From NCBI GenBank assembly GCA_022605425.2, contig CM061256.1:434001-498000 (forward strand): a DNA stretch of 64,000 nucleotides, in the 5' to 3' direction. The notes under the pieces are model-generated. The model ran no database searches and had not been told where the DNA came from. It worked only from the letters and a program-made list of their open reading frames with translations. A program made the translations under genes and the position numbers. Numbering within the stretch: the first letter of the stretch is position 1; each line of letters opens with the position of its first letter. The stretch is from Hamiltosporidium tvaerminnensis FI-OER-3-3 (taxonomy: Eukaryota > Fungi > Microsporidia). This document shows positions 11,601-64,000 of the stretch, one piece after another.

Positions 11601-11729
11601 TACGTGCTATAAATATCAGTAAATATAGAAATAGGTATTAAGAATCCACGCAAGTAGTTTTGTCATCTTTGACGAAACCTATATTTAAAGTTTTCCCACT
11701 CTATTCATTTACATAGAAATAAAAATAGC

Positions 11730-13016: not shown

Positions 13017-13259
13017 GCAGTTTAATATGTAGTAAGAAATTTTTGATATGAAATTTTGTTATCTATTCTTTTTATTTGATTAAAAACTTTTGATAAAATC
13101 CAAAACTTCATTATTGACTATTATAATGCATATATTTAAAATTTTATTGTTAGAAACAATAATATTGGATTAAAGTTGTGTAATATATGTGTCCCCAGTA
13201 GATATTATATACAACTCATAAATAGACAATATTATTATATTATCTATAGGATATTATAT

Positions 13260-13499
13260 TCTCCACCATGCCGGGAGCAGAATTGGTTTGAGTATTCTCT
13301 GCTTGTCGTAAGAGGCGCCAAAAGAGACTGATCCTCCATGTTGGGGTTAAGCGTAGGACCAACAACCCACCCTTCAAAACCTTCGTGTTACGAAACCCGA
13401 TAAGTAAAACCATTCACAGGAAAAAGACCGGTGGGCGATTTACTAAGGGAGGCCAAGGCTCGCACAGAGTTGTACTGATAAAGTATAATGAATGAATAT
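13260..13499 (+). mobile_element. Bipartite RTE-derived SINE-like element, family B copy 1
   Basis: RTE-like 5'UTR motifs (CTCTGCTTGTCGTAAGAGGCG..AAAAGAG; GGGGTTAAGCGTAGGACCAACAACCCACCC..TGTTACGAAAC) are joined to an RTE-like 3' end (GGAGGCCAAGGCTCGCACAGAGTTGTA) and an AATG tail. TSD GATATTATAT at 13250-13259 and 13500-13509. Confidence 0.8.
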
Positions 13500-16400: not shown

Positions 16401-16526
16401 AATAATTCCACTTTACCTTCGTTATTTTTTGCAACTCAAAATATCATAATTACAACATTTAAGGTGAGACGAAGCATTCTATCTAAAAAAATAATCATTT
16501 AGATACATTTTTATTTCTATGTAAAT

Positions 16527-17239
16527 GGTGGTGGAAAGATAACCCCTTAAAAAGCTTTTGCTTGGCAATGAGTATGTGAAACTGATATGAAACCATTGTT
16601 TGAATTTTAGGTAAAAATTAAACTATTATTTATTTGGTTGCTCCATATGATTTGTATTAGAAAGAAGGTCTATGAAATCGCGAAACGTTTTCTATAGTTT
16701 TATTTATAGTTTTTTATGTAACTATATTGTAGACCACAGTTGAACATATGGGTAAAAGCCATGTAAAAGCATTAAAACCCAACTTTGCGCACTTGAGTTA
16801 GAAGAGCGGCGCTTGGAAAATGCAAAAAACAAAACCATTTCAAACCGGAAATACCAAGTAGTAAGTTATACTAGTTGATATGACCTGGCACTGTCTAGGT
16901 GGATCCCATGTAAGTCTCTAAAACATATATTTGGTAGAAGTTAATAAGGTTCAGAAAGTGTAGAGTATGTGAGCATGCAGCATAGTCTTAGGAGATCAAG
17001 GGGGTTTGGCCTTCGATCGCACTCCATTCCACGACATTTACAAACTCTTGGCTCCTGCTTCGCCTAGGAAAGATTCTACACACTTGGTAGATGAAAGGCT
17101 TTGGAACGTAGGTATCGCAGGGTGAAGAGAACTGGTATTGGGGCAGTAGTTATTTATGCTAAACCTATAACTACGTACACGCTACGTAAACAAATATAAC
17201 ACTTGACACTGTTTTAAAGAGATTTATACTTTTAAAAAA
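16527..17239 (+). mobile_element. ~720-bp non-coding retroposon, family A copy 2 (most diverged)
   Basis: Starts GGTGGTGGAAAGATAACCCC..GCTTGGCAATGAGTATGTGAAACTG. Shares GCACTGTCTAGGTGGA, GGCCTTCGATC, GGTAGATGAAAGGCTTT and CAAATATAACACTTG in order with the other copies. Confidence 0.85.
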
Positions 17240-29159: not shown

Positions 29160-30420
29160 TTAACTTTGAAGAGTATAGCATAGTGCTGAATGGCAAAGCG
29201 AACATATTCTTTTGCAACTCTTGAATTGTTTATTAAAAAATAATAAATATCAACTAGACGAGCCGCAATCCTACAGTTGGATATATTTGAAAACTCATTT
29301 TGCATCAATAAAAAGCTTCTTAAACGTAAATTGTTGGTTAGAAGAAGAAGTCACTAACAGGGGTGTAACAGAAGCTCAACTTGCAAAATCATATAACGAA
29401 ATAAAAAAACGAAAATAACATTTAAAAATATATAATGCAAGAAAAAATGAGCTTTGAAATGTATGTGGCTCTTCAAGATGGCTAAAAAAAGAATATTAGG
29501 TCACGTGATGAAGCAGCGCTCTACTATATCCAAGATAGAAATGTATTCAGAGCACACAAGAAGTATGTGGCAACATTGTAATAAACCTGGCAAGCTTGTA
29601 GATCATCTAACAACTCGATGTGAAAAAATGTTAAGTATTGCCTACACCAGACGGCATAATGCTGTGGTTAGAAGTCTGCACATGCTAAATAAATATAAGT
29701 GTGAGTCTTCGACACAAATTAGAAGCCACTGAGTGCAAGAAATTCTTGAAAACGAGCATGCGGAGATATGAGTGAACACCCGGATAAAAACTGATTTCAA
29801 GATTCGGAATAATAGCCTTGATATATTTATTTTATAAAAAAAATAATGAGATAATACTCATTAAAGTATGAGTTACTTCTCAAAATAAACTTAACCAATG
29901 TTGAAACAAAAAAACTTAGGAAGTATGGCTTGCTAGCAAATGAGTTGGGTCTTATTTATAGGTTTGGTGTCGAGATAATTACTTATATGATGACCTAGGA
30001 TGATATTGTGACAAATACCATAAATCACATAAAAAGACTTTAAATATACTATAATAAAAGAAATACATTCAGTCTATTTTACTTATGAAGACAGTCGAAA
30101 CAATTTCATTTGATCGACGAAGAGGACTGGAGTCAGGACTAAATGCCGAAGAGAGCTGGGAGAGAGCGCCGACAGGTATTATTAAAAAATCTGAAAAGCA
30201 TGAAGAACCAAATACTTCGTTTATAACAAGCCAGCAATGACGTAGAATGTAGTAAACATTTAAAAACAAAAAATATAACATCGTTATTTTCAAAAAGAGG
30301 AACCCCGTGTGAGGAATTCGGCCATAAACATAAGAAAAAAGTATGGAATAGAAGAAGAAACAGTAAAGTAAAGGAGTTAAAATAAAATGCATGCAAATTG
30401 TACAAAACATTTTAACCAAA
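29160..30420 (+). mobile_element. Degenerate 3' fragment of an RLE-type non-LTR retrotransposon (copy 1)
   Basis: Pieces EAQLAKSYNEIKKRK, QHCNKPGKLVDHLTTRCEKML..YTRRHN and KTVETISFDRRRGLESGLNAEESWERA align with the ORF at 62299-63234. Many stops and frameshifts. Confidence 0.9.
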
Positions 30421-30638
30421 AATTTTTGGTAAGTTGATTTTAATTTTTATAACTCATAAAATATATTTAAATACGATTTTCTCGTGTACAGAGCGTATTT
30501 TTTTTAGTTAAAATTTTTATATGTTCACAAATATTATCTACATTAAACAATATTTCTTTGCTCGTTTTAACTATCATTAGAAAATTCAGAATGAATGTTC
30601 ATATCTTAAAAACTACCATTTTTATGTAATTATATCAT

Positions 30639-32498: not shown

Positions 32499-35400
32499 AT
32501 TGCAATATTTAACTTTACTAATAACATTAGTTTGACGAATGCTTTAATTTCTCGCGATATATGTTTACAATCGCTTTTTACGAGTTGAAAAATAATTTTC
32601 TAATGTAGTATATTCAATAGGGATTGCTGATAGAAATCCGAGTATATTTTGGATTTGATTCTAAGATTTTTTTTCTTTACTTTAGATATTACAGGCCACG
32701 AGGTCTTGTTTTTTTTCTTTTTTTGGCTCGGTCACGACTATATTCAAGCTTTTGTTCTGAACTCGCTGTATATATTGAGAAAAATCCTAAATATTTAATT
32801 GAATATTAAAAATTTTTGTTTTTTTTCAAATGTCTTTAAAGAAACAGATTTAAGACTTTTGTTTTCAAATAAATGCAAATATATCTATTTATTAAAAATT
32901 TCTATTTAGATAAATTGAGAAACAAAATCTCTTTGGTCTAAAATATCTAAGCTACACGGCGGCTGCATACTAAAATCTAAGAATATATATTTTTTCTCAA
33001 ATATATCGTACTGTAAATTTTCAAAATAAGATTTTCAAGTATAGAAACTCTTTTAAAAAAGGTATATTAAATATTCAATATCAGCAAGCGTAAATTTTAT
33101 TATAATATACAGCTTGCGAAATGTTCAATAGCTTTCCATGTTTTTATGGTAAATTAACAGCTTATGTAAAATTTTACGTTATCACTTTTTTTTGAAAATT
33201 AATTATAATTAAATCTTAGCAGCACAAATAAATTCTCTCAATAAAAGATTTAGACCGGTTTTATGGGGCTTAAGCCGTGTAATGCATGAACATATCATTT
33301 GTGATGGAATCCGCATCCAAAAAATTAATAGAATTATTTTTTCTAAGGTGCATTAATATTACAAAAACACCTTTTTTTAGTAGACAATTTTGGCAAAGCA
33401 TACCTATTTTATAAACTGGTTCGTAGTTTTAGGCTTGGGTAGACGCAAAAGGATATAATTACAATTTTTTTTTGCTTGAGAAGTACGAACTGCTGAAATA
33501 TTGTAGAAATATAAATTAAGTTAAAAATAAATTCTTTAATATTTATGTAAAAAAAACATATGTTTATTTCGACTAATGCAGTTTAATTAAATCATTTGAA
33601 ATACTTTGAAAAGTAACTGCTATAGTGTCAGAATTGTAATATTATAAATCAATATTTAAACAAAGATTTTCCCAAATCAAAATATTTGTAAAAGATTCGG
33701 CTAGGTAATTTAAAATAAGTCAATTAGTAGGCTAAAATACTTTTTTTAATATCCGATATAAATAATCAACTTAAATTAGAACAATAAATCAAAGTGAATA
33801 CGATTTTGATGTTGTATGTTTATGAAATATTTTTTCATACAATCAGATTACACGTAATGTTGTTACGAAGGTGCGACTCATACAAAGGCCTAGGTATGAA
33901 ATGGCAAATGACTGTTTTATGTGTATTTTCAATTTTAATATGTCGAATAACATTAACACAGTGTTATATTTGAGGGAAATTTATTGCTTTTTTTCAGTAA
34001 ACTAATACAATTTCATTATATAAATTTGCAACTTTGCAATATTAAGAACTATATGTTAATGTAAAAAACCATTTTTAACTTTGTTAAATTTTTAATTATT
34101 TGCTTCATAACTTATACATTATTTTAATTATTTTTGATTCGGGTTCTGTTCGAGATATTTATGAAGAATGCTAATATTGTAAAATCTTTAATAAAGTTGA
34201 CTTATTTAAAACCTAAAATTTTGCAAGAAATGCTTAATATAGAAAAAACGTTTCGTTTTCTACAAGAGGAATATATAATCTAAGTAAATAGATTGACAAA
34301 CAAAATTTGTACATTACAAAAGGTTTGAATCCTTTGATGGCATTTTTTGAAAAAAAATCAAATAGAAAACACTCTAAGCAACAAGTATTCGGAAAGCGTA
34401 ATACCAACTTAGTTATATTTTTTCTCTCTTATCTCTCGATGTCAAGGATGAAAAACTTGAAATTTTCTAATTGTTTTTTAAATCAGCTGTTACCGGGAAT
34501 TATGCGTATTTGGCTAAAGACCCGATGTGGTTTATATCCTACAAATGTCAAAAATGATTTTCTTAAAATTTTAGACGAACTTTGACAATCAAATGGGTTT
34601 TAATTTGGTTATTCTTCTCTCTACTCATAATACGAATATCAAACAGAATATAATAAGCAATTTTTGTTTTTATTTGAGTTGGCCAGTTAATCAGGTATCA
34701 ATAATGTTTTTCTCGACATTTCTGTGAAATGAAATTCTTTCGGTTAAATGCAATTCTAGTCCTCTTGATGTTAATGTTTGGATACAATATTCTTCTGATA
34801 TATGTTGGATATTTATAGAGGAAAGACATTTTTATTTTACGTAAAGAATTTAATCTTAAATATAATATTGAATATGTATTTCAATATGTTATGAACAAAT
34901 ATTTAAATAAAATATTTAGTTTAAAAAACATACAAAAAAATTAATATTTTTACGAAATGAGGACAAGAGTAATGTTTCTTAAAATTTAACTTTTATACAA
35001 ATATTTTAGTATTTTCTTAAGCAATTTTCAAAAATTTATTATTACGAAGCAAACATTTTGAAAAAATACATAGGAAACTAATTAACTTGACTCATTTGCA
35101 TAAACTAGCCGTTTTCTTTTAAGTAAACAAGATAACAGTTAGTAGTAAATATTTAAGCAGAAATAAGATATAATTTATTTTTGAACTAATTAAAATATTT
35201 TTTTGTTAGCAAAAGACTAATCAATTATTAAAATGATCGAAGTTTTAATTGCTAGAGCATTTCAAACCAGCGCCATACCAAAGTACCCAAAATATGTCTA
35301 TAATCAAAAAAGACATATTTCATCTCAGTTTTACATACATCTGTATATAAATACAAACACTTTTTTGATTACTTTTCAGATTATTTTTTCGCAATCATGC

Positions 35401-38400: not shown

Positions 38401-38942
38401 GTTTTGGGCAGGTCATAACTTTCATTTGATTATGCTTCTTGGTCTCATGGAATCCCAGATTACCATTATTAGACAATTAGAAAATGATTTATTTTAAAAA
38501 ATTATTTAGTAATAATTAATCAATTTTGCGTCATAAATTATCTATTTTATTCTCTATTTCTTAATCGGCAGTTTTAATTTTAATAAGAAATAAAATTTAT
38601 GTGTAATACTTTTGCTTTTGTATTATTCGTTAGTTCTAGAAGCTTCGATACTTACTTAATCAAACTAATCCATAGCGCTCGTTATCGATAGTCAACAAAT
38701 ATTTTTTTTATTTATTTAAATCTGATAAAGCTCGCTGATTATGACGGGTTTTGCAGCGATTTTTGTAGTTTATGACCTACATAAAGGGCAAAAAAGCTTT
38801 TCAAACAATTCTAAAAACACGACAAGATATATGTTTTAAACGTGTCTATCTTCCTTCCACTATTTACTAGAAGACTTTGAATTTAAAATATCCTAAAGAT
38901 TAAAACTTAAATATATTATTTTTAATTAATATTTCTATCTAT

Positions 38943-39671
38943 TTTATTAAAAAGTATCACATCTTTTTTAAAATAGTGGCAAGTGTTATATTTGTTTTCA
39001 TGACATTAACGCAGTTCTAGGTTTAACATAAATAACTGCTACCCCAACACTCCATCGGTAACCCCTGCGATACCTACGTCCCAAAGCCTTTCATCTACCA
39101 GGTGTGTAGAACCTAATTAATAGGCGAGGCAGTTGCTTGGAGTTCGTTAATGTCCGTTGCATGGAGTGTGATCGAAGGCCGAAGCCCCCCCTGGGATCCC
39201 CCAAGACTAAACAGCATTCCCACTTACTCTACACTTTCTGAACCCAATAAACTTCTAGCTAAGATATATTTCAGAGATTTACATGGGGTCCACCTAGACA
39301 GTGCAATGTCATACCAACAGGTATAACCTGCTACTTAGCTCTCCCGGCTTTATTGGTTTTTTGTTTTATATCTCACAGGCGCTAAGTCTTCTAACCCGAG
39401 TGAGCAAGGCTAGGTTTCCATGCTTTTACATGGCAATTACCTACATATTCAACTGCGGTCTGCAATCTGGTTACATAAAAAACTACAAATAAATTTGTAG
39501 AAAAAGTTTCTCCATTTCTTAGACCTCTCCTCCTCATAACAACTCCCATGGAACAACCGAAGATGTAGTGTGGTTTTATTCCCACCAAAAATCCAAACAA
39601 TGATCTCACACCAGTTTCACACACTCATTGCCAAGCAGAAAGTTTTTTATGTGGTTATCCTCCCTCCACTT
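38943..39671 (-). mobile_element. ~720-bp non-coding retroposon, family A copy 3
   Basis: Full-length copy flanked by an 11-bp direct repeat TTTCTATCTAT (38932-38942 and 39672-39682). In element orientation it starts GTGGAGGGAGGATAACCAC and ends GATGTGATACTTTTTAATAAA. Confidence 0.92.
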
Positions 39672-44752: not shown

Positions 44753-45755
44753 TTCTGGTCTATAATTAAGATTTGATTTATAGGTTATTTTTAGGGCAAA
44801 GACTATTTAATTGAACCTAATAATTAATTAGTTGTTGGTTAGGTAATAACAAAATGATCTTGTATAGATTCAGTAAACCAAAATGATAAATTCTATTTCT
44901 AACGAGATGAGCATTCAAATTGAGACTCTTTTTAGAAATTTGATATTCTTATTAAAAAAAATTGCAAATTTTAAAAGACGGTGAGTAGCCTTTTATAGTT
45001 TTTCTATTAAATTTTGTAGTTTAAAAATAAAAAATACAATGATTTGGATGACTAAGTATTAGAACAGTAACGTAAATATTGCCTAGGCTTTAAGAAGAAT
45101 GTAAAATGTATAAAAATATCAAATAGACAGATATAATGAAAGTATATTTACCATAGAATATTATTTTTTACATTTAAACACAAAACTTTTATAGATTTTA
45201 ACAAATATTACTAATCATTTGATTTCGCGAAAATTCTGAAATTAACACTTAGATGCTTGATTATTTACATGTGCTTTATTTTTTTATATTTTCAAATATA
45301 TTTTAGTTTCTCCATCAATCATTGCATTATTTCTTCGATAGGGGGTAAATGACATGGCACTCGAATAGCTGTGTTTGAAAGTGGAATTTTAAGAAATTGT
45401 ATATTTTTACTTGATAAATTGATTTACAACTCTTAAGAAAACATATTCTTCAGATTGAAGCAAAGTATATGCCTGCAAAATTTCGCCTGGCTATTCAGAA
45501 TCGTGTTTCATATGGCAAATAAATCATTATTATTTATAAATTGATCTGTGAAAGCTTTATAATATGATTATTTGTCTAGGTATCTGAATAGTACCGTCAA
45601 ATTTTAAAATCTAAGTACGAATTCTTTTTTTTATTTGTCGCATATAAATAAAATCTTTTTAGGTACATTATAAAACCCATCGTTAGTTTTATTTCTTTGT
45701 TTCTCGTGTAGATCATGGAATTTTCCTTTAATGTTAACCAGTGTTATATATGCTA

Positions 45756-45982
45756 ACCACCGTGCCGGGTGCAAAATGACATAGAGTATTCTCTGTTTGT
45801 CGGAAGAAGCGACAAAAAGAGACTAGTAATCCTTCTGTGGTTGACCGTAAGACTTAAAACCTACCCTTTAAACCCACATTGTTACAAAACCCGAAAAAGT
45901 AAACATTTTCTAAAAAACTGATGGATGGTATTACTGAGGACGCCAAGGCTCATACAGCCATATAGGGCCGATAATAAGGATA
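45756..45982 (+). mobile_element. Bipartite RTE-derived SINE-like element, family B copy 3
   Basis: CCACCGTGCCGGGTGCA..GAGTATTCTCTGTTTGTCGGAAGAAGCGACAAAAAGAGAC..TGTTACAAAACCCGA..AGTAAAC..TTACTGAGGACGCCAAGGCTCATACAG..GGGCCGATAATAA is colinear with 13260-13499. Confidence 0.8.
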
Positions 45983-48172: not shown

Positions 48173-50147
48173 TTATATTTCTATAATCCTTAATAAGGCT
48201 TCGATTTTTCCCTTACAATAGTTAACGGAATATTCAATATATCTTTTAGTATATAATTCATAATTTAATCCGACTTTTATAAAATGATTGAATATGACAC
48301 AAAGAGCTTCTGATATCTCCATCAGGGTCTCGATGCGATAGCGCGATAGAAGAATTGCTTTGCTTTTGAGAATTTGCACAATAAGATCTATATAATTCAG
48401 TTGGTTTTTAACAATGCTATTACCTCGAAAAACGTAGAGCGAAAGAAGTTCGATTTCAAAGAAATCAATATATGACTCAATCAAATTTTGATAGAATAAT
48501 CTAAAATTTGAGAAAACATCAATGTCTAAATGACATGAACCTTCAAAAATCCTCAAAAGGAAACAGTTAATATCTAACAACGAGTCATGATCTTTAATAT
48601 TTGCTATTTTTTGAGCTTCTAATCCTAAAATAAACAATGATATCATTTTAGGATCAATTCTGAACATACAATCGGCCACAAGCCCTACTAAAATTTAGGT
48701 GACAACCGCGGGATATATGAATGTCTTTGCTTCTATACATAGCGTTATTAAACATGTAATCCAGCATGGAAATATATTCTCGCGAAATGTTTGATATTCT
48801 AAAAATCTTTCTTGCTATTCTGTAAAAAACCACGTATAGTCTTTTTAGAACACAAAATGAAGCTTTGTCTCCGTTATAAACATCAAAATCTTTGTATTTT
48901 TCGACTGTCACCTCGCCTACGTTAATTCTATCATTCGGTACTCTATTCGGTTGTACATTACAAAGAGAGTTGGCGGCTTTAAGAAGTAGAATCCATAAAC
49001 ATGAAGACTTAACCAAATTTATGTCCTCAAAAATAATATTCTTTAAAAAATATTTTACATTAATTAAACAAGGAAAGTAGGACAATAATGGAGAGTTAAT
49101 ATTGCAAAAATCGTATTTCAGTAAAGATTCATGCATTTTTTCAGACAAATATTTTAACATCGTTAATGAATCAAATTGTGACCAAAACGTTTTCTCCATT
49201 ATGAATATATGATCTATTAAATCAAAAAACGAGTGATATTCGTTTTCTAAAAAATATCCGTCAATAGAAAAATCATTTTCAACAAAAAAAGTAATATCAG
49301 AAAATCCTATAAATTCCGTCTGCAAACGAACGAGTATTCCATAATTCTTACCCCGTGTATCTATCATTCTACTGAAAGATTGTAAACGGGGATGATATAC
49401 CTCCGTATTACGATGGTTTTTCAACTCCAGTTGTGGGATATAAGCTTCGGGTGATTTCATGAAGACAAATGGGCTTTCGAAATTTAAATATCTTCTTGGG
49501 AAGCGGGTATATCTCGATGAAACATCTTCCATAATGTGTAACTTGTTGACCGATTTATTATTCTTGTGAGATTTATATCTCATATCTCTATCATATCGCC
49601 TCGGTCTACTGTATAAATCACAAACATGTCCTTCGGTTCTTCTACAGTCTTCATAACCCTCAAGCGTATACTTTCTTACACTAGAAAAATGAGTGTTGTG
49701 AGAATAGTAATCACGGTTTTTTTGATCTATTTCTTTTCTATTATACGGAAAATATCGATTATTTGTTTCCTTTATCATCTCATCTCGGTCTGAAATAGGT
49801 TTCATAGCACTTAAGCAGTTTCTTGATATTAAATAACTTTCTTCGTCGTGAATAGAAAACTGGTTTTCACTTGGAAGCATTCGCGTAGTTTCATGAATGG
49901 ATCCAATACTCAAACTACTGGCTTCCTGATATGAAAATATATCTGGGTCTCGTGATTCGCTTTTTACCAGGTGCTTAAGAGGGATCACATTCGGGCTGTT
50001 TAATACTTCAGTGTTGTATTCGATCATTGGCCTATAATCATCATTTTCATTAATACGTTTGAAAAAATGCGAGTTCATATCATCGTGGTACCTAGAAGAA
50101 AACACAAAATATAATAGAAAAAACAAATAGTATGTATTTCTTAGCAT
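48173..50147 (-). CDS. Putative secreted lineage-specific protein, paralogue 1 (~657 aa if the 1-nt frameshift near 48683 is corrected)
   Basis: ORFs 48654-50147 and 48173-48679 together align end to end with the conserved domain of 57922-59916 (FSIDGYFL, NSPLLSYFP, SCLWILLLKAA, FNNAMYRS, EISEALCVIFNHFIKVGLN). The N-terminus MLRNTYYLFFLLYFVFSS is signal-peptide-like, and a CCC motif lies upstream of the ATG. Confidence 0.85.
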
Positions 50148-51900: not shown

Positions 51901-53029
51901 CTGATTATTTTGGATGGTATCATTCAGATTATTTGTGGAAATACAGAGAAAGTTTTTCTACATTCAAAGTTTTATTTGCAAGACCAAGAATCTTTGAGCT
52001 AAGGAATTCAAAAACAAAAACTTGCCTAACGCTGCTTTGAATGCAAAACAGCAATGGCTATAACGAAACGGCTTGCTTTGGAATGTTCCACGTGTACTAG
52101 TTTCTATGTCAAAATATCACGAGGATAAAGAGCGAAATTCATTTTATTTTTTCAATGAATGCTGCTGTAAGTCTTGCGTAAACTCTAGCTCGTCTAGTTG
52201 TAATAATAGAAGTCTTTTCTTGAAATACAACTTCTTTCAATCAAACAATTTTTTCAATTGTTATTAGCTCGTTAGAGGTTTTCTGGATGCGAACGATTTA
52301 TAAATAATTTTTCCGAGGTATAAAGAAAAAAAAATACTTTTCAATGATGATGTATGAGCGGAGCTATAAAATCTGGTCGATCATACAAACATCTATTTGG
52401 CTTAAAAGACAATAAGAAGAAGCGGTGAAGGTAAGATCATTTAGAGGAAATCTACAACAAATATCCTCTGCTATTGGAATTTACCTCAGAAGACTTCGGA
52501 AATTAAGCGTCTAAAAATAGGAGACTACAGCAATGCTCGAAAGAAAAAATTTCTTTAATCACGATTAAATATTCAGAAGCGTACAACATCAGGTGCTTAA
52601 AATACATAAGATAACATTAACAGGTTATTCACCAAAGTTATGGGGAAGTTATTTCGTTATAAAGCGCCTCTCTCATGTTCTAAAAACAATCAAAGGAATT
52701 GAAAACTCAATATAAAATAATAAGAAAAACGAATTGTGTATTAATTAATGTTCGAAACTGCACTAGATGAAATAAATAAACCCCAACAAAACCTCTTTAC
52801 TGAAAAAAAGACGGCGCTGAAACCCGCTATAGCAAAGTTTTTCACTTACTGATAAGGTTTGCTCATGAGTTGCTTCATCAGAGAAAAAAGTCGGCGGTTT
52901 ATATTTGCATAACACGTCTTATGTCATTTCATAAATTATGAAATACTTGTAAAAACTATGCATTATAAAATGTTACACCACCATAGAGTAGGTTTTATTA
53001 ATTATAAATAACAATGTAGTGTACAAGCG

Positions 53030-53759
53030 GTGTGGAGGGAGGATAACCACATAAAAAACTTATGCTTGGTAATGAGTTTGTGAAACTGGTGTGAGGATCA
53101 TTGTTTGGATTTTCAGTCGAACTAAAATCACACTACATCTTCGGTTGTTCCATGGGAGTTGTTATGAAGAAGATATATCTAAGAAATGGCTAAACCTTTT
53201 AACGAATTTATTTGTAATTTTTTATGTGCCCAGATTGCGACCGCATCTGATCCTGTAGGTAATTTCCATGTAAAAGTATGGAAACCTAGCCTTGCTCACT
53301 CGGGTTTGAAGACTTAGCGCCTGTGAGATATGAAAATAGAAACCATTAAAAGCCCGGAAAGCTAAGTAGCAGGTTATACCTGTTGGTATGACATTGCACT
53401 GTCTAGGTGAACCCCATGTAAGTCTCTGATATATATCTTAGCTAATCGTTTATCGGGTTCAGAAAGTGTACAGTTAGTAGAGATTCTGCATAGTATTGGG
53501 TAAGCTCAGAAAGGGTTTCGGCCTTCAATCACACTCAATGCAACGGATATCAACGAACTCCGGGCAACTGCCTCGCTTATTAATTAAGTGTTACACACCT
53601 GTTAGATGAAAGCCTTTAGGATATAGGTATCTCAAGGTTTACCCATTAGTGATGGGCTAGCAGTTTTTTATGTTAAACCTAGAACTGCGTTAATGTAATG
53701 AAAAAAATATAACACTTGCTACTGTTTTAAAAATATGTGATACTTTTAAATAAAGTATA
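53030..53759 (+). mobile_element. ~720-bp non-coding retroposon, family A copy 4
   Basis: Full-length copy flanked by a 10-bp direct repeat TGTACAAGCG (53020-53029 and 53760-53769). Confidence 0.92.
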
Positions 53760-53769
53760 TGTACAAGCG

Positions 53770-55400
53770 TATTGCGAAGATACTGCTACTCTCTTAGAAG
53801 TTGTTGAGCTTACTAAAATTTAGGAACTCTAAAAGATAGAAAAAGTAATCAAACACTTAGCTCATTTGAAGAAGTATAAAACAAACTTAAATCACGTGTT
53901 AGAAGACTTTGCCACATTAAATGAAACGCAAAAAAAAATATTTTCTTCAATTAATCAACATGCGGTATCTTTAATCCGCTACCACATAGGTGTACTTCGT
54001 TTTGAACCAGCGAACTTCTTTAAGTTATATGATGCAATACGTGCGTTGTTGGTAAAGAATAATTTGAATCTTCATCCAGGGTGTAAAGAGCATTTTTATC
54101 TTCCTAGAACAGAACTTGGAAGAGATCTTATTATTGTTGAGTTGCAAGCGAACATAGGCTTCTACAACTCTTAGATCGTCCGGAAAAGGTAAAGAAATAT
54201 CTACTAGATGTGCATCAATCCTAAAAGTGGAGAATAATGATAAAACTCACCTTTGACTAATTAAAATCTTTTTAAAAGTAAAGTACAGGTTGGTAGAAGA
54301 AGTTCCTAAAAAGAATTTAGAAGAAGCTCAAGTTAAAAAATTATATAACAAAATAGAAAAACAAAAACAAAGACAAAAACTTGATTCAAAGTTATATAAT
54401 GCAAAAAAAAATGAGCATGTGAGTATTGGTGACTCTTCGAGATGGCCAAAGAAAAAAAATATTAGGCCACGCAATGAAGCAGTATTCTGCTTTATCCGGG
54501 ATAGAAATATATTCTAGGGAGCAGATGGTATGTGCCAACACTGTTATAAATTTTGCTAGACTGTAGATCATCTAGCAACTCGATGTGAAAAAATGCTAAG
54601 TCATGAGTACACCAGACCGCATAATGAAATTGTTGGATGCCTACATTTACTTCTCCTAAATAGATATAAGTTTAAGTCTTAAAAACGGATTAGAAGCCAT
54701 TCAGTTCAAGAATTTCTGCATAACGAGTATGCAGAGATAAGAGTGGACATCAGAATAAAAACTGATGTTAAAATTCGGGGTAATAGACCCGATATTTTTT
54801 TTAGATAAAAAGAAGAATAAGATAACACACATTGAATGAGGAATTACTTCCCAAGATTCTCTTCAAATAGTTGAAACTGAAAAACTTAGGAAGTATGGCC
54901 TGCTGGCCAATGAGTTTGGTCTTATTTATAAGTGTAGTGTTGAGATAATCCCTTATGTGATGACCTGGGACGGTATTGTGACAAATACTATAAGTCATAC
55001 CTTAAAAGACTAGAAATACCCATGAATGTAGAGGCATACATTCGGTCTATAGTACTTAAGAAGACAGTCGAAACAATTTCTTTTGATCGACGAAGAGGAC
55101 TTGATTCAGGATTAAATGCCGAAGGGAGCTGGTATAGAACGTCAATGGGTGTTATTAAGAGAGCCGAGATGCATGAGGAGCCAACACTCATTTTAAAACA
55201 AGCGAGTAGAGGGGAAGATTTTGTTAAAGAATTAAAAACAAAAAATATTAAATCTATATTTCAAAAGGAGGATCTAAGTTAGAGGAACCGACCATAAACA
55301 TATGTGAAGAATCGGAAATAGAAGAAGAGACGGTAGTGGCAAAAGAAGTCGAAGAAAATATATAAAAATGATAAAAAAAAAGTTTTAACCCATAACCTTA
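53770..55400 (+). mobile_element. 5'-truncated degenerate RLE-type non-LTR retrotransposon (copy 2)
   Basis: Starts at CEDTATLLE (end of RT). It continues with INQHAVSLIRYHIG and FYLPRTELGR (post-RT thumb region, LYxPRxxGGRG-like), a CCHC knuckle (CQHC..DHLATRC), NRPDIF, EKLRKY and KKTVETISFDRRRG. Interrupted by stops and frameshifts. Confidence 0.92.
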
Positions 55401-57921
55401 TTATATAAACGTAACGGATAACATGTTTTATTTTCCTTATTATTTATAATTGTTTTTTATACATGTATGGCGAGACGTTTGGGTGTTTTTAAAAGCTGGT
55501 GTAGCTCTAAACGACTTATAAAATTCATTTAAGAGGCTATAAACAGGTTTGATAGGCTCTGACGACCAAAATTTTAAATTTAAGATAAAGAATTCTATTT
55601 CGCAATTTCCTATTTTTTTGGGATTTTTTATTAATTGCGATATAATAATCGTTTACAGTATGAGTTTCTTGGTTATATTGGCCGAATTGTTTTCAAGAAA
55701 CAATGTTAAAAAAATCAATTAAACGAGGACATACCAACCCGTAATTAAACCGAAAAGGCACTGTTTCGCTAATATAAAAGTCTAATTTTATAGAGTTTCT
55801 AGGCGACGGTCATTTGCGGCAAATATGTGTCAAATGGGCTTATTTTGCGGAGTATTGGGCGGATAAAGCATATTTAGGTGTATTTTGTTCATTCCATATG
55901 TACATGTATAGACAGAGTCTTCATTTGATGTGCATTTCAAGCAAATTATACATCCGGTTTTAAAATCTGTTGAAGTTATATTTTCGAATAATGCACTTAT
56001 AAATCAGAAAATGAACAAAATAAACAAATATTTGTCGATTACGACATTGGCTTCGTCGACAGAAAGATATGATATTTTGCAAAATCAAAGAAAAATTTAA
56101 TTATATATACAATTTTTCAAGCAAAAAATTTATGGATAAATTAATAAAAGCAAATTTTACTCGGGTCAATAAATACAACAAGACAATAAATAAATTCCGA
56201 AAGAAGATTTAGGAAATCGATAAGTAAAAATGCTTTCATATACGAATAAGAGGCAATCTACCAAAATGATTTTGATAGCTCAAGATAAAATAATATGTAA
56301 AAAACACAGATTGAGCTTTAAAAATGTATTCAATGAAGATAGGTGAAATAAAATGCTATAAAATCTTAGGTCTACATAAGTTGTTCTCTTTTCATGCTAA
56401 GATATCAAACAATTAATTATATAACTTTAATTAAAAAAATGCACTTCCTTTGTTTAAAATTTAATCAAAGAGATGAAGAATTTAGGAGGATTTTGATGTC
56501 AATTAAAGATGGAAATAAAAGTATAAATGATTTATTTTTCACATGAAAAGCCTAAGAAAGTATTTGCAAGAAGCGAATGCGAAAGCTTTTCAATAGAATA
56601 CGACAGAGAGCAGTAATTTTGAGCTGATTTCATTCGAAACTCATTCTATAGATCATCCTCTGTATAAAACAATTTAATCATCAAGGAGTGTTAATTTAAC
56701 TTCTGCGGTTTCTATGCCGGTGATGTTTTTTTGCGTATTTAATTTTTTATCATCGTTTTAGGGGTTTATTTTTTATATTTTAATTTACCAGTTGATTTGA
56801 AATTCTTAGAACGAAGAAAAATATAATCGACCGTTGGTCAAACGAATGTTACTGAAAAAAAATAAAAATAATCAGGTCTAATATTTTTAAAACTGTATTT
56901 ATATTTTTTATGGTGTATATGTAAGCGATTTTCTATATACAGAAATATACAGCAGCTTTAAATGAGTTCGATAATGATTGATTGACAAAATTAAAGAAAA
57001 ATGGAGCTACCTTTGTTTAATTTAAGAGGAATTTTTGTGATTAGATTTGAATATCTGTCTATTGAATTATAAGTACAGAACTAAAATTTATCTATTTTTA
57101 CTCTCTTATTTAAAAATATCAGAATTTAGTTCTATATGGTATTAAAATATAAAAATCAAATATTTTACAAGTGTTGAATATCATTTTCATCTCAAAGAAT
57201 TGACATATGTTATTTTGGTGTAAAAATATTTTTAGAATCCCTTGGTGATTGTCTCTTGTCAATCCTGTTTTTCTTGATTTTCTTGTTAGAAGCTGAAGTA
57301 GAAAATAAACACATAGATTGAGAAACTTCCAGTACATATCTAAAAAAATTGGATATCGAATTAAATTTACACTACTCTAATGAATTATCGAGCAACGTGA
57401 ACATTTTTATTACAAAATATTTCACATTATATTTTATTAATAATCGTCTGGTAACATGATAGGAACAATGTATTTGATTTATATCATTAAAAAACTACAC
57501 TTAAATTTTTTCCTTCATGAATTTAAATTATTTTTCTATATCTATGAGTAATCCTATATAAACCATATAATTTAAAAAAATATGAACAAATATTATTTTT
57601 TAACGATTTTCACCAAAAAAATCTAGAATGACAGAATTTAGCAGTTTTAAAAAAAACTTAATTAGTAAATGAATCGAAATTGACTGAATCGATTTTGAAA
57701 CACTTATATGAATCGAATAATATTTTAGAATGATAATACAATCAGAAATTTTGGTCAAAAGAAAAAACTTAGTTAATGATTTTGAAAAAAATAATATAAA
57801 TAAATTGGAATAGGAAATATTTGTAAACGTATAAACTCAGAATTAACGGATTAAAAGGGTAAGTTATATTTTTTTAAAAAAATGTCATAAAAACTTAAAA
57901 TGCTATTTTAAAATATTAATT

Positions 57922-59916
57922 TTAATTTTCGCTGAGACATGTTAATCTTCCAAAAATTATCAATATCTTTTTTATATTCTTATTGCAATAAAAAAAAGAC
58001 TTTGCAATATATTTATCTGGATATAACATATTATTTAATCCAACTTTTATAAAATGATTAAATATGACACAAAGAGCTTCCGAAATTTCCATTAAGATCT
58101 TTAGATCCAATTTCCGTATTAACAAATTATTAATTTTATATTGATGTACGATATCTTCGATGCAAAGTAGATCCTTTCTAACATAGCTACTATCTTCATC
58201 TCGAAAATTATTTAAATAAAGTAACTCGGTTTTAAAAAAATCGATGTACGATTCTATAAGATTTACATAAATACATTCAATATCTAATTGATTATTAAAC
58301 TTTAATACAGATGAATTTACGTAAAGTCTCTTAAATAAACGATTGATCCTATTTCCTGACTTAGAATCTGTAATATTTGAAATGCCTTGCCTTTTTAATT
58401 CTGAAATCAATGATATTATCATTTCGGGGTTCATTCTGAAAATAGAATCTGCTATAACTCTACTGAAATTTACATGACAACCAAATGTTATATGTAGATC
58501 TATGCTTTTGTACATCGCATTGTTGAATACAAATTCGAGCATAGAAAAATATTTCCTCGAGATTTTCGCACATCTATAAATTTTTTTTGCGATTCCATAA
58601 AAAATTACAAATAATGTTTTAAGAACACGAAATGCATCATTATCTCCGTTATAAACATTAAAATTCTTGTATTTATTGAATATCACTGTATCTTTTTTTC
58701 TTATATTGAGCAGTATCGAATCAGGCTGCACATTACAGAGTGATTCGGCTGCTTTAATAAGTAGAATCCACAAGCATGAATTTCGAACGAAATCCATGTC
58801 ATCGAGAATAATATTTCTTATAAAATACTTTATATTAACTATACCGGGGAAATATGATAGTAATGGAGAATTTGATTTGCAGAGATTGTAATTCATCAGA
58901 AGAATATTCATTTCGTGAGCCAAATATTCTATTCTTTTTTTGGCGTAAAATTTTGACCAAAATCTCTCTTCTATAGCAAATATTTGATCTATTAAATTAT
59001 AAAAGGGACGATAATCTGTGTACAAAAAATATCCGTTGATAGAAAAATCACCTTGAATAAAATCTTCTATAACAGAAAACTCTATATATTCCCTGTCCAA
59101 ATACTGAAATATATCGTAAAATCTACCGCGTGTATATATCATTTCATCAAAGGAATTTACATCCGGGTTAAAGGATTTATTATTGGGGCATCTATTGATT
59201 GAGTTGTAGGACGATCTATTTTTCTTCGCAGATCTGAAGGAATTGGATGGCTCTAATTGAGTTTTTTCAAAGCAAGCGGCCTTTGAATCTGATAAGGAAT
59301 TATCAGATTGTAGATAGGCACCTGTTGATACAGCATTCGAATCTGATTCATACCTGCAATAATGATAACATTTTTCACGGTTACTATCAAAATTTTTATC
59401 ATGTCGTTTATTATGCCTTTCTTCTGTATCAAAATTTAATGATTCTCTTCTTGACTCGCAAAAACATTTATTTTCAAAAACAGAATCGGTATTTTTATCT
59501 CCAACTGAGCTTTTTTTATAAGGAAAATCTCGGGATCTTTGACTTTTTTTTATCCTTTGTTCATATTCGAAAGGTTCGTTATCCCTCATATGTTTTCTTT
59601 TTCTACAAAAAGGGTCACTATTGTGTGAATAACAGAATAACTTGTCCTTTTGACCTTCTTGTCCAATTTCTTCTATACTTCCACCCCTAGATGTTATATT
59701 TCTTGGATATGAAACTATATGAAAGTCATTATGTTCAATTCTAGAGATATTTTTAGAAAAATAAATTCTTTGATTGTGCAATGGTTCACTTGTATTCCTG
59801 TTTTCTACCAAGAAATCATTATCGCCTTCATCGTAATTCTTCCTTTTTTGTATCTTATATTGCGATAAAAATGCAAAATTTAGTAAAAGAATTAAAATCG
59901 ATATTCGTATTTTCAT
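57922..59916 (-). CDS. Putative secreted lineage-specific protein, paralogue 2 (664 aa)
   Basis: Intact ORF. The track's TTG start at 59937 is less likely than the ATG at 59916, which is preceded by GTCCCT and gives MKIRISILILLLNFAFLS (signal-peptide-like). A polar or basic N-terminal region of ~250 aa precedes a conserved ~400-aa C-terminal domain shared with 48173-50147. Confidence 0.92.
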   Translation of the reverse strand: MKIRISILILLLNFAFLSQYKIQKRKNYDEGDNDFLVENRNTSEPLHNQRIYFSKNISRIEHNDFHIVSYPRNITSRGGSIEEIGQEGQKDKLFCYSHNSDPFCRKRKHMRDNEPFEYEQRIKKSQRSRDFPYKKSSVGDKNTDSVFENKCFCESRRESLNFDTEERHNKRHDKNFDSNREKCYHYCRYESDSNAVSTGAYLQSDNSLSDSKAACFEKTQLEPSNSFRSAKKNRSSYNSINRCPNNKSFNPDVNSFDEMIYTRGRFYDIFQYLDREYIEFSVIEDFIQGDFSINGYFLYTDYRPFYNLIDQIFAIEERFWSKFYAKKRIEYLAHEMNILLMNYNLCKSNSPLLSYFPGIVNIKYFIRNIILDDMDFVRNSCLWILLIKAAESLCNVQPDSILLNIRKKDTVIFNKYKNFNVYNGDNDAFRVLKTLFVIFYGIAKKIYRCAKISRKYFSMLEFVFNNAMYKSIDLHITFGCHVNFSRVIADSIFRMNPEMIISLISELKRQGISNITDSKSGNRINRLFKRLYVNSSVLKFNNQLDIECIYVNLIESYIDFFKTELLYLNNFRDEDSSYVRKDLLCIEDIVHQYKINNLLIRKLDLKILMEISEALCVIFNHFIKVGLNNMLYPDKYIAKSFFYCNKNIKKILIIFGRLTCLSEN

Positions 59917-59930
59917 AGGGACTAAATATT
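59917..59930 (-). promoter_or_regulatory. CCC motif upstream of the start codon
   Basis: The minus strand reads AATATTTAGT-CCC-T-ATG. Confidence 0.6.
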
Positions 59931-61751
59931 TTTTCAATTTATAGGCACAATAATAATTTGCTACATTTAGAAGTCAAAATATTAGTATTTTCCAAATTTT
60001 ATCATATTATAATTCATCTCAAAAAGGTAACTCTTTTCTTTTTTGATTTTTTCAAGTAGGTAAAAAAAAATTCAAAGTTTTTTTCATGTATTGCTTTCTT
60101 TTTTAAAAATGGAAATTTTTTTCGAAGCTGTGGTCGAAAAAGAAGCATTTAATCTTTCAATGTGAAAATATTTTTGACGTTTCTTCGGAATCCGCTCATT
60201 TAATCATGTACTTAATAATTTATCTTCTTTATCTCTAAAACTGTTCAATATATTTGCTTTTGGATTTATGGTTTATTTTCTAGGTTTATTAGAATCATGT
60301 GTTATAGATATTTTGAATAATATTCTATATTACTATTAGAGAGCACTTTTCTTATTTCCTTCTGCTTCTTAAACCATTTTGTAGATTATACCTTGAAGCA
60401 AAAATGGTGGTATTTCATTAGAGGCTACGAGATCAAATTCAACCTAATCTTATTTTCGTTTTTTAGATATCTGATTTACGGAATGTTGAGTTACAATAAA
60501 GAAAACTTTTAAAAACACGACGAACAAGAGATTATTTCATGGTATCTCATGCAATAATTTCTTTCACTGGTTTTACTTGCTCTTTAATTACATCTGGTCT
60601 AATATGATTTTCTTAATAATTCTTTAAACCTTTTTTCATCAAATCGAATGTTTTAACCATTTCAGAATTACTTTTGCAGCTGCTTTTCATCAAAATTTAT
60701 TCTTGAAAATAAGTTACATGCGCATAGCCTTTTTTTTTCTCGAAAAGGTTCTTTCTGTTGTTTTGCGAAAATTCTATTCATTATATTTAGTTTCTATATT
60801 TGTAGCAAATTAAAAAAATCACATATTGAGTATCATATATCCCAGTATTAAGAATTTCTCGTGTCTATATAAATATTTTATGCTTTCTCGTTAATATCAA
60901 CGAACGAAATATAAAAATTCTTGGCTAGTTTATCATATTAATAGAATAATATATAGCTATTAAACCTTTTTTAAACCTATAATTCATTAGTAAAGAATTT
61001 CAAAGTTAAATTATTCCGAGATTCATTAACCTAAAATAAATCAGTTTAAAAAATTGTTTATTTCAACACAAACATTCCTATTATTCTTCAATACTTTGTA
61101 ATAGCAAATATTCAAATCTTATTTTGTTCTTTAAACAATAGAATCAAAAGTCTAATATTCTTTCGAATAGCATAAAATGTATAATAGAATACAAAACACA
61201 CTATAGGTTAGTTTAAATTTTTAAAAATACAACTTTATTTAATTGTAAGATTTTATAATATCTATATACCTCTTCTAATAAAATATAATTCTGGCAAAAT
61301 AAAAAAATTTTCAGATATTTTAGCATGCTAGTCATATGGTTTTCAAAAAAAATATTCTTATTTGAGAAAATTCACTATGAAAATAAAAAGATGCAGAAAA
61401 TAAAAAGCTACAGTAAAATAACTGTATCGTGGTGGAAAAATATAATTAGAAAATTTAAAAAAATGCGAAAAATTACTTTAATCTAGGAATTTTTCTTTAA
61501 ATTTCTTGCATTATTTTACATATATTTTCTGACCATCTATTGGTATTTGGCTTTATTTCCATATTTTGAGCAAAGAATATAAAAAAAAACAAACCAGTTC
61601 AAAGAAAATGCACTTTTGAAGAAATGAAAAAAATCAGACTACTTTTTAATGTTATATCTTCATAAAAATCATTGCGTTTTTGGTTGATTGGATGTATTTT
61701 AACATCGTGCCTAAATGAAATATCAAATTTTTTTTCGTAATTTTCAAATAA

Positions 61752-61961
61752 GGTGGAGGGAGAATACCCACATTAAAAACTATCTGCTTGGGAATGAGCG
61801 TGTACAATTCGTGTGAAAATCATTGCTGCCATTGTGTTAGGATATAAACCACATCGGATATATAGACTGATTCCTTATGATACGAGTCGAAACAAATAAA
61901 AGTTTTTCATTTTTTGATACTCGACACTGAGAGATAAAGGAGGAATGAAATAAGGGAGCAA
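61752..61961 (+). mobile_element. 210-bp non-coding retroposon, family C copy 2
   Basis: Perfect 15-bp TSD GTAATTTTCAAATAA (61737-61751 and 61962-61976). The head GGTGGAGGGAGAATACCCACATTAAAAACTATCTGCTTGGGAATGAG..GTGTGAAAATCATTG..AAACCAC matches family A, but the body is different. Confidence 0.85.
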
Positions 61962-62269
61962 GTAATTTTCAAATAAAAAATTGTACTAAAAAGAAATATT
62001 AAAGCTCGGGTAAAGGCGACATTACAAACATTTATATTTATATGCTATATTTTTATGCAATTATAAGTAATGGCATTTTTCTACGGTTTACAAGCAATAT
62101 AGACGAATAAAATCGATAATATTATTTGATCTTGTTTTTCTCAACCAAATGGATTCGTAGACAAACAAACTAGAACTTTAAATTAATTTCAATAAAATTG
62201 AAATTAAAATTTGTTAATCATAGTTTATAATTTCAGAGAAATAGAAGTCCGGTCCAGTTTAAATTTTTT

Positions 62270-64000
62270 ATTCAATAAAATTCTGGGTTAAAATATTTTT
62301 ACCATTTTTTTATGTTTTCTTCTACCTCCTTAACCACTTCTGTCTCTTCTTCCAAATCCGACTCTTTATTTATGTTATTGGTCATTTCCTCTAAAGTGGT
62401 TCCTCCTTGTGAAATAAGGGGTGCTTTATTTTTCGGTTTAAAATTTTTTGCACCATCTTCCTCTTTCTTCTCTTCTTTTAAAGGGGGTGTTGGTTCCTTG
62501 TGCATCTCTGCTCTCATAATAACACCCATTGACGCTCTCTCCCAGCTCTCTTCGGCATTTAGTCCTGACTCAAGTCCTCTTAGTCGATCAAAGGAAATTG
62601 TTTCGACTGTCTTCTTAAGTACTAAAGACTGAATGTATGCCTCTACATTCATGGGTATTTCTAGTCTTTTAAGATGAGATTTATGGTATTTTGTCACAAT
62701 ACCGTCCCAGATCATTACGTAAGGGATTATCTCAACACTACACTTATAAATAAGACTCAACTCATTGGTTAGCAGGTCATACTTCCTAAGTTTTTCAGTT
62801 TCAACTATTTGAAGTGAATCTTGGGAAGTGATTCCTACTTCAATGTGTGTTATTTTATTCTTCTTCTTATCTAAAATAAATATGTCGGATCTGTTATTCC
62901 GAATTTTAACATCAGTTTTTATTCTGGTGTCCACTCTTATCTCTGCATACTCATTATCAAGAATCTCTTGAACTGAGTGACTCCTAATTCGTTTTGAAGA
63001 CTTAAACTTATATATATTTAAGAGAAGTAAGTGTAGGCATCTAACCACTTCATTATGCCGTCTTGTGTAGTCATGGCCTAGCATTTTTTCACATCGAGTT
63101 GCTAGATGATCTACAGTCTTACCAGACTTCCCGCAGTGTTGACACATACCATCTGCTCCCCAGAGTATTTTTCTATCCTGGATATAGCAGAACACTGCTT
63201 CATTTCGTGGCCTAATATTCCATCTCTTAACCATCTTGAAGAGTCAATAACACTCACAAGCTCATTTTTCCTTGCATTATATAACTTTGAATGGAGTTTT
63301 CGTTTTTTTATTTCGTTATATAGTTTTGCAAGTTGAGCTTCTTCTAAACTTTTCTTAGTGACTTCTTCTACCAACCTGTACTTTACTTTTAAGAAGCCTT
63401 TTATTAGTGCAAGATGTATTTTCTTATTATTCTGAACCTTGAGGATTGCTGCTCGTCAGTTGATATTTCTTTTCTTTTTTTAGACAATCAAAGAGTTGGA
63501 AAAGCATATGTTAGCCTGCAACTCAACAATAATAAGATCTCTTCCGAATTCTATTCTACGGAGGTACAAACGCTCTTGGCACCCTAAATGAAGATTCGTA
63601 GTATTCTTTACCAACACTGCACGCATTGCATCATATAACTTAGAGCGCTTCCGCTTCGTCTATGTAAACTTATAAGGTAGTTTAGCAAAGAGATTACCTA
63701 ATGGTTGATGGTTTGCAATAAAATTTTGCCTATAATCGTGTGCAAAAATGTCTCTTAGTCCTGATATCACTTTGCTAAGAACTTCTTAGGACGAATTACT
63801 TGTTCGAATTCCTCTAATATCTTCTATTGTACCAATGTATTTTAAAACACCTTTTCCTTAAGAAAAGTGACAGTATCTTCGCAACAGGTCGTTTATTGCA
63901 GACTTCTCTTTGTTTATCTTAAGCCAATCACTTTTAAAAATTCTTTTGCCTCATCTGTAATTGCACTCAATATTGAGATGTCTTTTGCAAGGAGGTTAAG
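62270..64000 (-). mobile_element. RLE-type (R4/Dong-like) non-LTR retrotransposon, copy 3, running off the window end
   Basis: RT C-terminal remnants (frameshifted, 63400-64000), followed by the CCHC + endonuclease ORF and a short 3' UTR (TTTTAACCCAGAATTTTATTGAATAAA). The TTTTAACC motif is shared with copies 1 and 2. Confidence 0.93.
62299..63234 (-). pseudogene. C-terminal CCHC zinc knuckle + restriction-like endonuclease segment of the retrotransposon ORF
   Basis: CQHCGKSGKTVDHLATRC (CX2CX8HX4C), RRHN, NRSDIFILD..IEVGIT and EKLRKYDLL form the PD-(D/E)xK RLE motif set. The segment is open for 311 codons but separated from upstream coding sequence by a frameshift near 63240. Confidence 0.9.

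Follow-up and report, generated by a model that had tools for sequence, protein, structure and literature searches.

Our analysis implies that a repeat of about 720 nt, here called family A, is likely to be a non-coding, non-autonomous retroposon of Hamiltosporidium which is mobilised in trans, probably by a long interspersed nuclear element (LINE) that we refer to as LINE B. We investigated this family in a stretch of 64,000 nt from Hamiltosporidium tvaerminnensis FI-OER-3-3 (assembly GCA_022605425.2, contig CM061256.1, positions 434001-498000), which is called the window below and to which all coordinates refer unless a locus or another contig is named. H. tvaerminnensis is a microsporidian parasitizing Daphnia magna (PMC12376958). 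Interspersed repeats make up 39.6% of its genome of 21.6 Mb (GC 26.6%), and unclassified repeats account for 25.5% of the genome (PMC10542269). Two surveys of microsporidian transposable elements list LINEs, long terminal repeat (LTR) elements and DNA transposons, and short interspersed nuclear element (SINE)-like elements are not among them (PMC4202319, PMC7313128); a full-text literature search for a microsporidian SINE or other non-autonomous retrotransposon likewise returned nothing relevant.

Four full-length copies of family A are present in the window, at the positions and on the strands reported in a first-pass annotation of this DNA, and two of them carry exact target-site duplications (TSDs) of the sequence named there:

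11730-12451, minus strand: copy c1, identity to the family majority ~86%, lacking its own TSD
16527-17239, plus strand: copy c2, identity to the family majority ~80%, lacking its own TSD
38943-39671, minus strand: copy c3, member of a young subfamily, 97-99% identical to the family majority
38932-38942, minus strand: 3' TSD of c3, ATAGATAGAAA, exact; single in H. magnivora (L010, 20436-20446)
39672-39682, minus strand: 5' TSD of c3, ATAGATAGAAA, exact, 11 bp
53030-53759, plus strand: copy c4, identity to the family majority ~88%; also in H. magnivora, with the same TSD
53020-53029, plus strand: 5' TSD of c4, TGTACAAGCG, exact, 10 bp
53760-53769, plus strand: 3' TSD of c4, TGTACAAGCG, exact; a LINE (B2) starts 2-3 nt beyond

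Multiple alignment and self-BLAST showed that these copies, 713-730 nt in length, are 72-87% identical pairwise (alignments of 713-739 nt, E from 1e-92 to 0) and that the homology among them ends exactly at the element boundaries. The window copies are thus neither chance matches nor parts of larger duplications. Their GC content of 36-41% exceeds the 23-33% of the 3-kb flanks, as had been proposed. The earlier statement that the family lacks a conserved open reading frame (ORF), terminal inverted repeats and LTRs also holds: each frame on both strands contains 9-22 stops with no open stretch common to the copies, the first 40 nt match the reverse complement of the last 40 nt at just 9-17 positions, and the termini read RGTGGA... 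and ...AATAAA, with no TG..CA. The 5' end is R followed by GTGGAGG in nearly all copies, with at most 1-2 additional bases. The 3' end, previously read as TTT(T/A)AATAAA-like, is CTTTT(N)AATAAA-like (N being T or A in the window copies) and is followed by 0-5 variable bases; poly(A) is absent.

In order to widen the sample, further Hamiltosporidium loci were fetched via LINE proteins and neighbouring genes and were then searched with a family A profile; the resulting sample of about 165 kb of H. tvaerminnensis DNA is biased, as its loci were chosen for containing a LINE. It holds 10 independent full-length copies, of which the window and locus L005 contribute four each and L009 and L011 one each, as well as three old diverged matches and one match truncated by the end of a contig. 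Identity to the family majority ranges from 97-99% (c3 and the young copies d1 and d2) down to 80% (c2) and is uniform along the element in a windowed comparison, which is the pattern of a long-lived family that includes a young subfamily. The TSDs measure 11, 10, 12, 13-14, 8 and 8 bp, a range of 8-14 bp that possibly extends to 20, and three older copies have no TSD of their own. As a control, mismatched flank pairs (n = 72) were found to share a longest string of 6.4 nt on average, only one pair exceeding 10 nt. Exact-pattern scans of JGI metagenome contigs with one pattern from the family A body and one from its 5' region gave no match.

Two empty sites in H. magnivora, the sister species, document the insertion itself. 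On the H. magnivora contig PITI01000001.1, which is collinear with window positions 60216-37408, c3 is lacking and the sequence passes directly from the base before the element to the base after it, with the 11-bp ATAGATAGAAA present once. Similarly, copy d1 (L005 8765-9493, on CM061248.1) is absent from H. magnivora PIXR01001630.1, which is collinear with L005 and in which the 12-bp TTTTGTAGTAAT is single. Both empty sites are clean and show no excision footprints. Therefore, family A inserts, duplicates 11-12 bp of its target and has moved since the split of H. tvaerminnensis and H. magnivora. Copies c4 and d4 are older and occur in both species, and the insertion of c4 predates the split.

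These data bear on several other origins, some of which the first-pass annotation had itself put forward as ways in which its reading could fail. One would argue that an element of about 0.7 kb is a solo LTR, since this length is LTR-like and LTR retrotransposons are present in the genome (PMC4202319). However, the TG..CA ends of LTRs are missing, the TSDs vary between 8 and 14 bp and are not of a fixed 4-6 bp, and self-BLAST found no pair of direct copies enclosing an internal region in the window; pieces of a segmental duplication, in turn, do not agree with homology that stops exactly at the element ends, and we give either origin next to no probability. Slightly more attention is due to a non-autonomous DNA transposon whose ends are atypical, such as a Mutator-like element (MULE) without terminal inverted repeats that moves by cut-and-paste or copy-in: some superfamilies do make TSDs of 8-11 bp, and such elements occupy about 7% of the genome (PMC10542269). 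Nevertheless, we consider this very improbable, given the lack of inverted termini (9-17 of 40 positions), the variable TSD length (8-14 bp, possibly 20), the asymmetric ends with AATAAA plus variable extra bases, and the presence in the same genome of a LINE with the same hallmarks. A Helitron was rejected as well, because the TSDs are proven by empty sites and the termini differ from 5' TC and 3' CTRR.

One amendment is that family A is not a one-off: its first ~110 nt, the head, are common to a second non-coding family of about 210-220 nt, family C. The corresponding features of the window are:

39547-39671, minus strand: head of c3 (AGTGGAGGGAGGATAACCAC to TAAAACCACA), covering its initial ~110-125 nt; family C elements open with this module
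61752-61961, plus strand: family C element of 210 nt, with the family A head and an unrelated body
61737-61751 and 61962-61976: 15-bp TSD GTAATTTTCAAATAA of this 210-nt element
34405-34625, minus strand: second family C element, ~220 nt, with flanks GTATTATG and GTATTACG and an 8-bp TSD
2664-2771, minus strand: diverged head-only match
38763-38861, minus strand: diverged head match ~70 nt downstream of the c3 3' TSD, present in H. magnivora too

Families A and C have only the head in common, and family C elements possess TSDs of their own (15 and 8 bp). The outer end of the module is uniform, R and then GTGGAGG in most of 12 elements. In a total of about 200 kb of Hamiltosporidium DNA searched for the head, all matches belong to family A or family C elements, and none of the sampled loci places a head beside sequence coding for reverse transcriptase (RT). 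Since one head is joined to unrelated bodies, the design of the two families is modular, as in SINEs. As a side observation, the 15-bp TSD sequence of the family C element at 61752 has a third occurrence at 3652-3666, with about 35 nt of similar context; about 0.002 chance occurrences are estimated, and the sequence may represent either a short repeated motif or a favoured target.

The head does not resemble those of classical SINEs. As the first-pass annotation had stated, no tRNA or 7SL head is present: ARAGORN finds no tRNA, Rfam gives no match at gathering score for the whole window, and the head has no tRNA, 5S or 7SL likeness. The Rfam check proposed at that stage also yielded nothing meaningful for c3, for which matches at E up to 10 are only noise and include no ribozyme family. 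An internal promoter for RNA polymerase III (Pol III) was rejected as a supported reading, as no A box or B box occurs in the head within 2 mismatches and family A contains conserved T5-T6 runs at about positions 80, 167 and 190, which would terminate Pol III and thus argue against transcription by this enzyme. The suggestion that the RNA 5' end is set by self-cleavage did not survive either. RNAalifold gives no support for a conserved fold of the four full copies (covariation term +3.9) and just a 4-bp hairpin on either strand for the 12 heads; the RNA folds no better than shuffled sequence (minimum free energy z-scores of -0.94 and -0.69), and a hand check for a P1 helix like that of hepatitis delta virus (HDV) found no consistent pairing. 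A 5' ribozyme, such as the HDV-like ones of R2 and L1Tc or the hammerheads of Penelope-like elements and retrozymes, was accordingly rejected as a supported reading, although the folding tools used cannot fully exclude a pseudoknotted fold.

The candidate partner, LINE B, is represented in the window by three copies, all of which correspond to the 3' part of a LINE:

29162-30426, plus strand: LINE B1, 5'-truncated
53770-55409, plus strand: LINE B2, 5'-truncated, immediately past the c4 3' TSD and in the same orientation
62267-64000, minus strand: LINE B3, running off the window end, with a 311-aa ORF containing a CCHC motif and a nuclease-like region

A protein search with the 311-aa ORF gave 463 relatives (E up to 0.001); among the matches listed nearly all come from Hamiltosporidium and many are named reverse transcriptase by their source. 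A complete LINE B (L004 1137-4926) is 3.79 kb long, is flanked by a 14-bp TSD, starts 1 nt before the ATG and contains a single ORF, in which about 500 residues are followed by the RT domain (RVT_1) and a C-terminal region. Another copy has a 15-bp TSD. The 3' terminus reads ...TTTTATTNAATAAA(A) with no poly(A), which is the same style as in family A. LINE B copies are dispersed among unrelated flanks, so that insertion is not site-specific, and 10 of the 11 measurable copies are 5'-truncated, the shortest being about 0.63 kb. An apparent common 5' boundary of 1.39-kb B units was discarded as an artefact of a variable region, the copies extending further and being truncated at different points. 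The truncation lengths also bear on one claim of the first-pass annotation, namely that uniformly full-length copies of family A suggest a precisely defined RNA 5' end: as the shortest LINE B copy has about 0.63 kb, a template of 0.72 kb would usually be copied whole, and the finding that all copies are full-length needs no special mechanism.

LINE B is likely R2-like, with a predicted C-terminal zinc-finger and restriction-like nuclease region. Pfam returns weak zf-RVT and restriction-nuclease hits (E 0.05-0.09) and detects no APE domain (Exo_endo_phos), although matches with E up to 10 were admitted. The top PDB matches found by Foldseek with a low-confidence structural model are R2 proteins (9dou_A at 8e-4, 8iby_C, 8gh6_A), followed by cap-snatching PD-(D/E)XK nucleases; PDB sequence searches with pieces of the LINE ORF or with a 14-sequence profile found nothing. 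For an R2-type element, it is unusual to find dispersed copies, 14-15 bp TSDs, no poly(A) and a start 1 nt before the ATG in combination. A relative of LINE B with 66% DNA identity was also seen, together with a Ty3-like LTR element, in locus L007 (ENA ERZ26167841, contig ctg15108, 24% GC), an AT-rich contig with eukaryotic MCM and Sybindin genes that holds no family A or C in its 21 kb.

One link between family A and LINE B comes from two shared insertion sites. In two of the 10 cases a family A copy lies directly upstream of a 5'-truncated LINE B in the same orientation, namely c4 with LINE B2 (window 53020-55420) and d1 with the LINE of L005 (8753-10670), and in both the TSD of family A ends 2-3 nt ahead of the first base of the LINE. 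By a rough estimate, adjacency within a few bases would arise by chance in about 6e-4 per copy. At the d1 locus a diverged third copy of the target (11 of 13 bases) is found past the 3' end of the LINE, and d1 thus sits inside the upstream TSD copy of the LINE; at the c4 locus, the match past B2 is weak. The H. magnivora contig contains the LINE with a single target copy at the d1 locus and lacks family A, therefore the LINE was inserted first. From these two cases it appears that family A re-uses a site preferred by the same endonuclease as that of LINE B.

The block formed by c4 and LINE B2 shows a separate peculiarity. Over 53030-55409, compared with L006 and L010, it diverges by 4.7-5.4% between H. 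tvaerminnensis and H. magnivora, whereas divergence in the same alignment is 0-0.8% for the flanks, for LINE B3 and for the family C element. The changes are derived in both lineages, with G>A the most frequent. This could reflect gene conversion with a paralogous block as donor, an ancient polymorphism or an error of short-read assembly.

The shared sites are also relevant to the question which strand of family A is transcribed. If it were the opposite one, the ~110-nt module would be a 3' tail, derived from the 3' untranslated region (UTR) of an unseen "stringent" LINE and recognised by the RT of that LINE, and the AT-rich TTTATT... end would be a variable 5' end. The uniform end of the module agrees with this, as do the 0-5 extra bases at the other end, which are often found at 5' junctions; one terminal module carried by different families is moreover the classic pattern of a LINE-derived SINE tail. 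Nevertheless, no LINE with the module at its 3' end was found in the ~200 kb searched, where head matches are confined to families A and C, and at both shared sites family A has the orientation of the LINE only if it is read on the strand given here, which favours that strand. The AATAAA end without poly(A) matches the LINE B terminus, and family A is A+G-rich on this strand, like the sense strand of LINE B. Transcription of the opposite strand therefore seems unlikely to us.

Several observations nonetheless weigh against our assignment of the strand and of the partner. The last 60 nt of family A are not significantly similar to those of LINE B (p 0.05-0.8 against random windows), and 81 of 674 windows ending in AATAAA score as well in this comparison, so that only the terminal motif is common to the two; an apparent collinear match in the last 60 nt was consequently dropped as not exceeding the AT-rich background. 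This fits transcription of the opposite strand, as does the number of candidate partners: Parisot et al. reported 12 LINE families in H. tvaerminnensis (PMC4202319), and our choice of partner is drawn from the one family examined. No 5'-truncated copy of family A, which would have established the strand as well as target-primed reverse transcription, was seen in the sampled DNA. The AlphaFold model of LINE B has a mean predicted local distance difference test (pLDDT) score of 39, with only residues 300-450 usable, which weakens the assignment to R2. R2-type LINEs are classically site-specific, while families A and B are dispersed. Finally, the complete LINE B contains no match to the head. It starts at the ATG, and the idea that the head is the 5' UTR of LINE B was rejected on this ground.

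The headless LINE B also means that family A is not a simple deletion derivative of it. One could still suppose an internally deleted derivative of some other autonomous LINE, whose 5' end would survive as the head and whose 3' end as the tail, in the manner of R2 SIDEs, RIME/ingi or NARTc/L1Tc. The non-autonomous partners of R2 and L1Tc are built in this way (PMC3414825, PMC3185411), a 5' module common to several families resembles the 77-nt module of L1Tc (PMC3185411), and the start of the head is precise to one nucleotide. However, no head match adjoins RT-coding sequence in the sampled DNA, and the sole LINE encountered there, the very abundant LINE B, has no head and begins a single nucleotide ahead of its ATG. 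We regard such a derivation as distinctly improbable.

Thus mobilisation in trans, with LINE B as the probable helper, remains our preferred reading. The proposal of a SINE-like parasite mobilised in trans, which the first-pass annotation had made, stands as far as the non-coding sequence, the variable TSDs, the two empty sites, the 10 copies and a LINE with a like TSD and 3' end are concerned; the RNA intermediate, the partner LINE, the strand that is transcribed and the function of the head we infer. An RNA of about 720 nt would start at a defined position (RGTGGAGG...) and stop at AAUAAA or shortly after it. It would be copied into DNA at a staggered chromosomal break by an RT and endonuclease supplied in trans, and the insertion would leave no poly(A) but a TSD of 8-14 bp (possibly 20). 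The abundant 3.8-kb single-ORF LINE B would be the most likely source of the enzymes. The head may carry a signal to make or to recruit the RNA, presumably as an internal promoter of RNA polymerase II (Pol II) type or as a binding site for the ribonucleoprotein, and not as a Pol III promoter or a ribozyme.

Such a lifestyle is close to that of SINEs. Family A is short, non-coding, interspersed and non-autonomous, is composed of head, body and tail with a head common to families, and would depend on LINE enzymes; it comprises 10 dispersed copies with unrelated flanks, no ORF, TSDs of 8-14 bp and two empty sites. SINEBase recognises a head by tRNA, 5S or 7SL origin (at least 60% identity over 60 nt) or by a demonstrated Pol III internal promoter, and its families span 75-662 nt, with a length limit for SINEs of <700 bp (Vassetzky and Kramerov, PMC3531059). 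The head of family A is in contrast not Pol III-derived, and with 713-730 nt the element lies beyond that limit, which bears out its earlier description as unusually long. With respect to the 3' region that SINEs have in common with their partner LINE, family A and LINE B both end in TTTT(N)AATAAA without poly(A), their 60-nt tail similarity being at background. Family A therefore works like a SINE and is not a member in the strict SINEBase sense.

Other non-autonomous retroposons offer further parallels. R2 SIDEs are internal deletions of R2 that keep the 5' ribozyme and the 3' UTR and insert only in 28S rDNA (Eickbush and Eickbush, PMC3414825). Family A is similarly non-coding, a few hundred nt long, precise at its 5' end and free of poly(A), and its candidate partner is R2-like; however, it has neither end in common with LINE B beyond the AATAAA motif, shows no ribozyme signal, and is dispersed with long TSDs. 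In trypanosomatids, NARTc and L1Tc as well as RIME and ingi have a common 5' module, and the 77-nt module of L1Tc acts as an internal promoter and an HDV-like ribozyme that fixes the RNA 5' end (PMC3185411, PMC5814959). Families A and C likewise open with a 5'-terminal module of ~80-110 nt common to several families, including non-coding ones. The trypanosomatid module is, however, also present at the 5' end of the autonomous LINE, in contrast to the headless LINE B, and the heads of families A and C display no HDV-like fold or covariation. LINE-dependent retroposons of Pol II type without a Pol III head are represented by primate SVA and by the SINE-like Eg-R1 of powdery mildew (~700 nt), which are non-coding, several hundred nt or more in length, end in a polyadenylation-signal-like sequence and are mobilised in trans. 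In SVA, known repeats are combined into a composite that carries a poly(A) tail; family A differs in having no A-tail and a body with no recognisable source.

More tentatively, it could be that the head is a portable 5' module new to Microsporidia and functionally like the 77-nt module of L1Tc, providing non-coding RNAs of Pol II type with a fixed 5' end and with access to an R2-like, non-site-specific LINE machinery. Families A and C would then be the first SINE-like parasites described in Microsporidia, would form a sizeable part of the 25% of unclassified repeats and would tend to re-enter target sites used by LINEs. We hold this wider proposal to be considerably less probable than mobilisation in trans as such.

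The remaining features of the window are of local interest. The only mismatched flank pair of the 72 that shared more than 10 nt belongs to c1 and c2, which are inverted and 4 kb apart:

11707-11726, minus strand: 20-nt ATTTTTATTTCTATGTAAAT, 3 nt past the c1 3' end, identical to the 5' neighbour of c2
16507-16526, plus strand: the same 20 nt ATTTTTATTTCTATGTAAAT, abutting the c2 5' end

This arrangement would be expected if c1 and c2 had recombined and the segment between them had been inverted, with an exchange of the inner flanks. The reciprocal flank pair shows no match and neither copy looks chimeric, although the uniform windowed identity is uninformative here.

Two paralogous genes on the minus strand (48173-50147 and 57922-59937) have ~68% DNA identity and products starting with a hydrophobic stretch. 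The latter encodes a protein of 664 aa (57925-59916), which is identical in GCA_022605425.2 and GCA_004325045.1. The former, to which UniRef gives the name "Spindle pole body component", is intact (657 aa) in H. magnivora and in short-read H. tvaerminnensis assemblies; here it is split by a frameshift near 48660 into ORFs of 497 aa and 168 aa, and is either a real pseudogene or the result of a long-read indel error. Pfam gave no hits for the host ORFs of the window. A pair of ~210-nt repeats (13255-13467 and 45747-45957, 72% identical) lies outside families A, B and C.

Family A is a new, recently active family with a modular head, while the kind of element to which it belongs is already known. 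Together with family C it gives names, boundaries and a likely mechanism to part of the unclassified repeat fraction of this genome. Judging from 10 copies per ~165 kb, in a sample biased to LINE loci, family A could amount to a few per cent of the genome and to hundreds of copies or more. LINE B is of interest in itself as an R2-like element that is dispersed and makes TSDs of 14-15 bp. As two insertions absent from H. magnivora attest activity since the split of the species, the young copies could be used as presence/absence markers in the Daphnia-parasite system. Family A also bears on the debate over the bloated genomes of vertically transmitted microsporidia.

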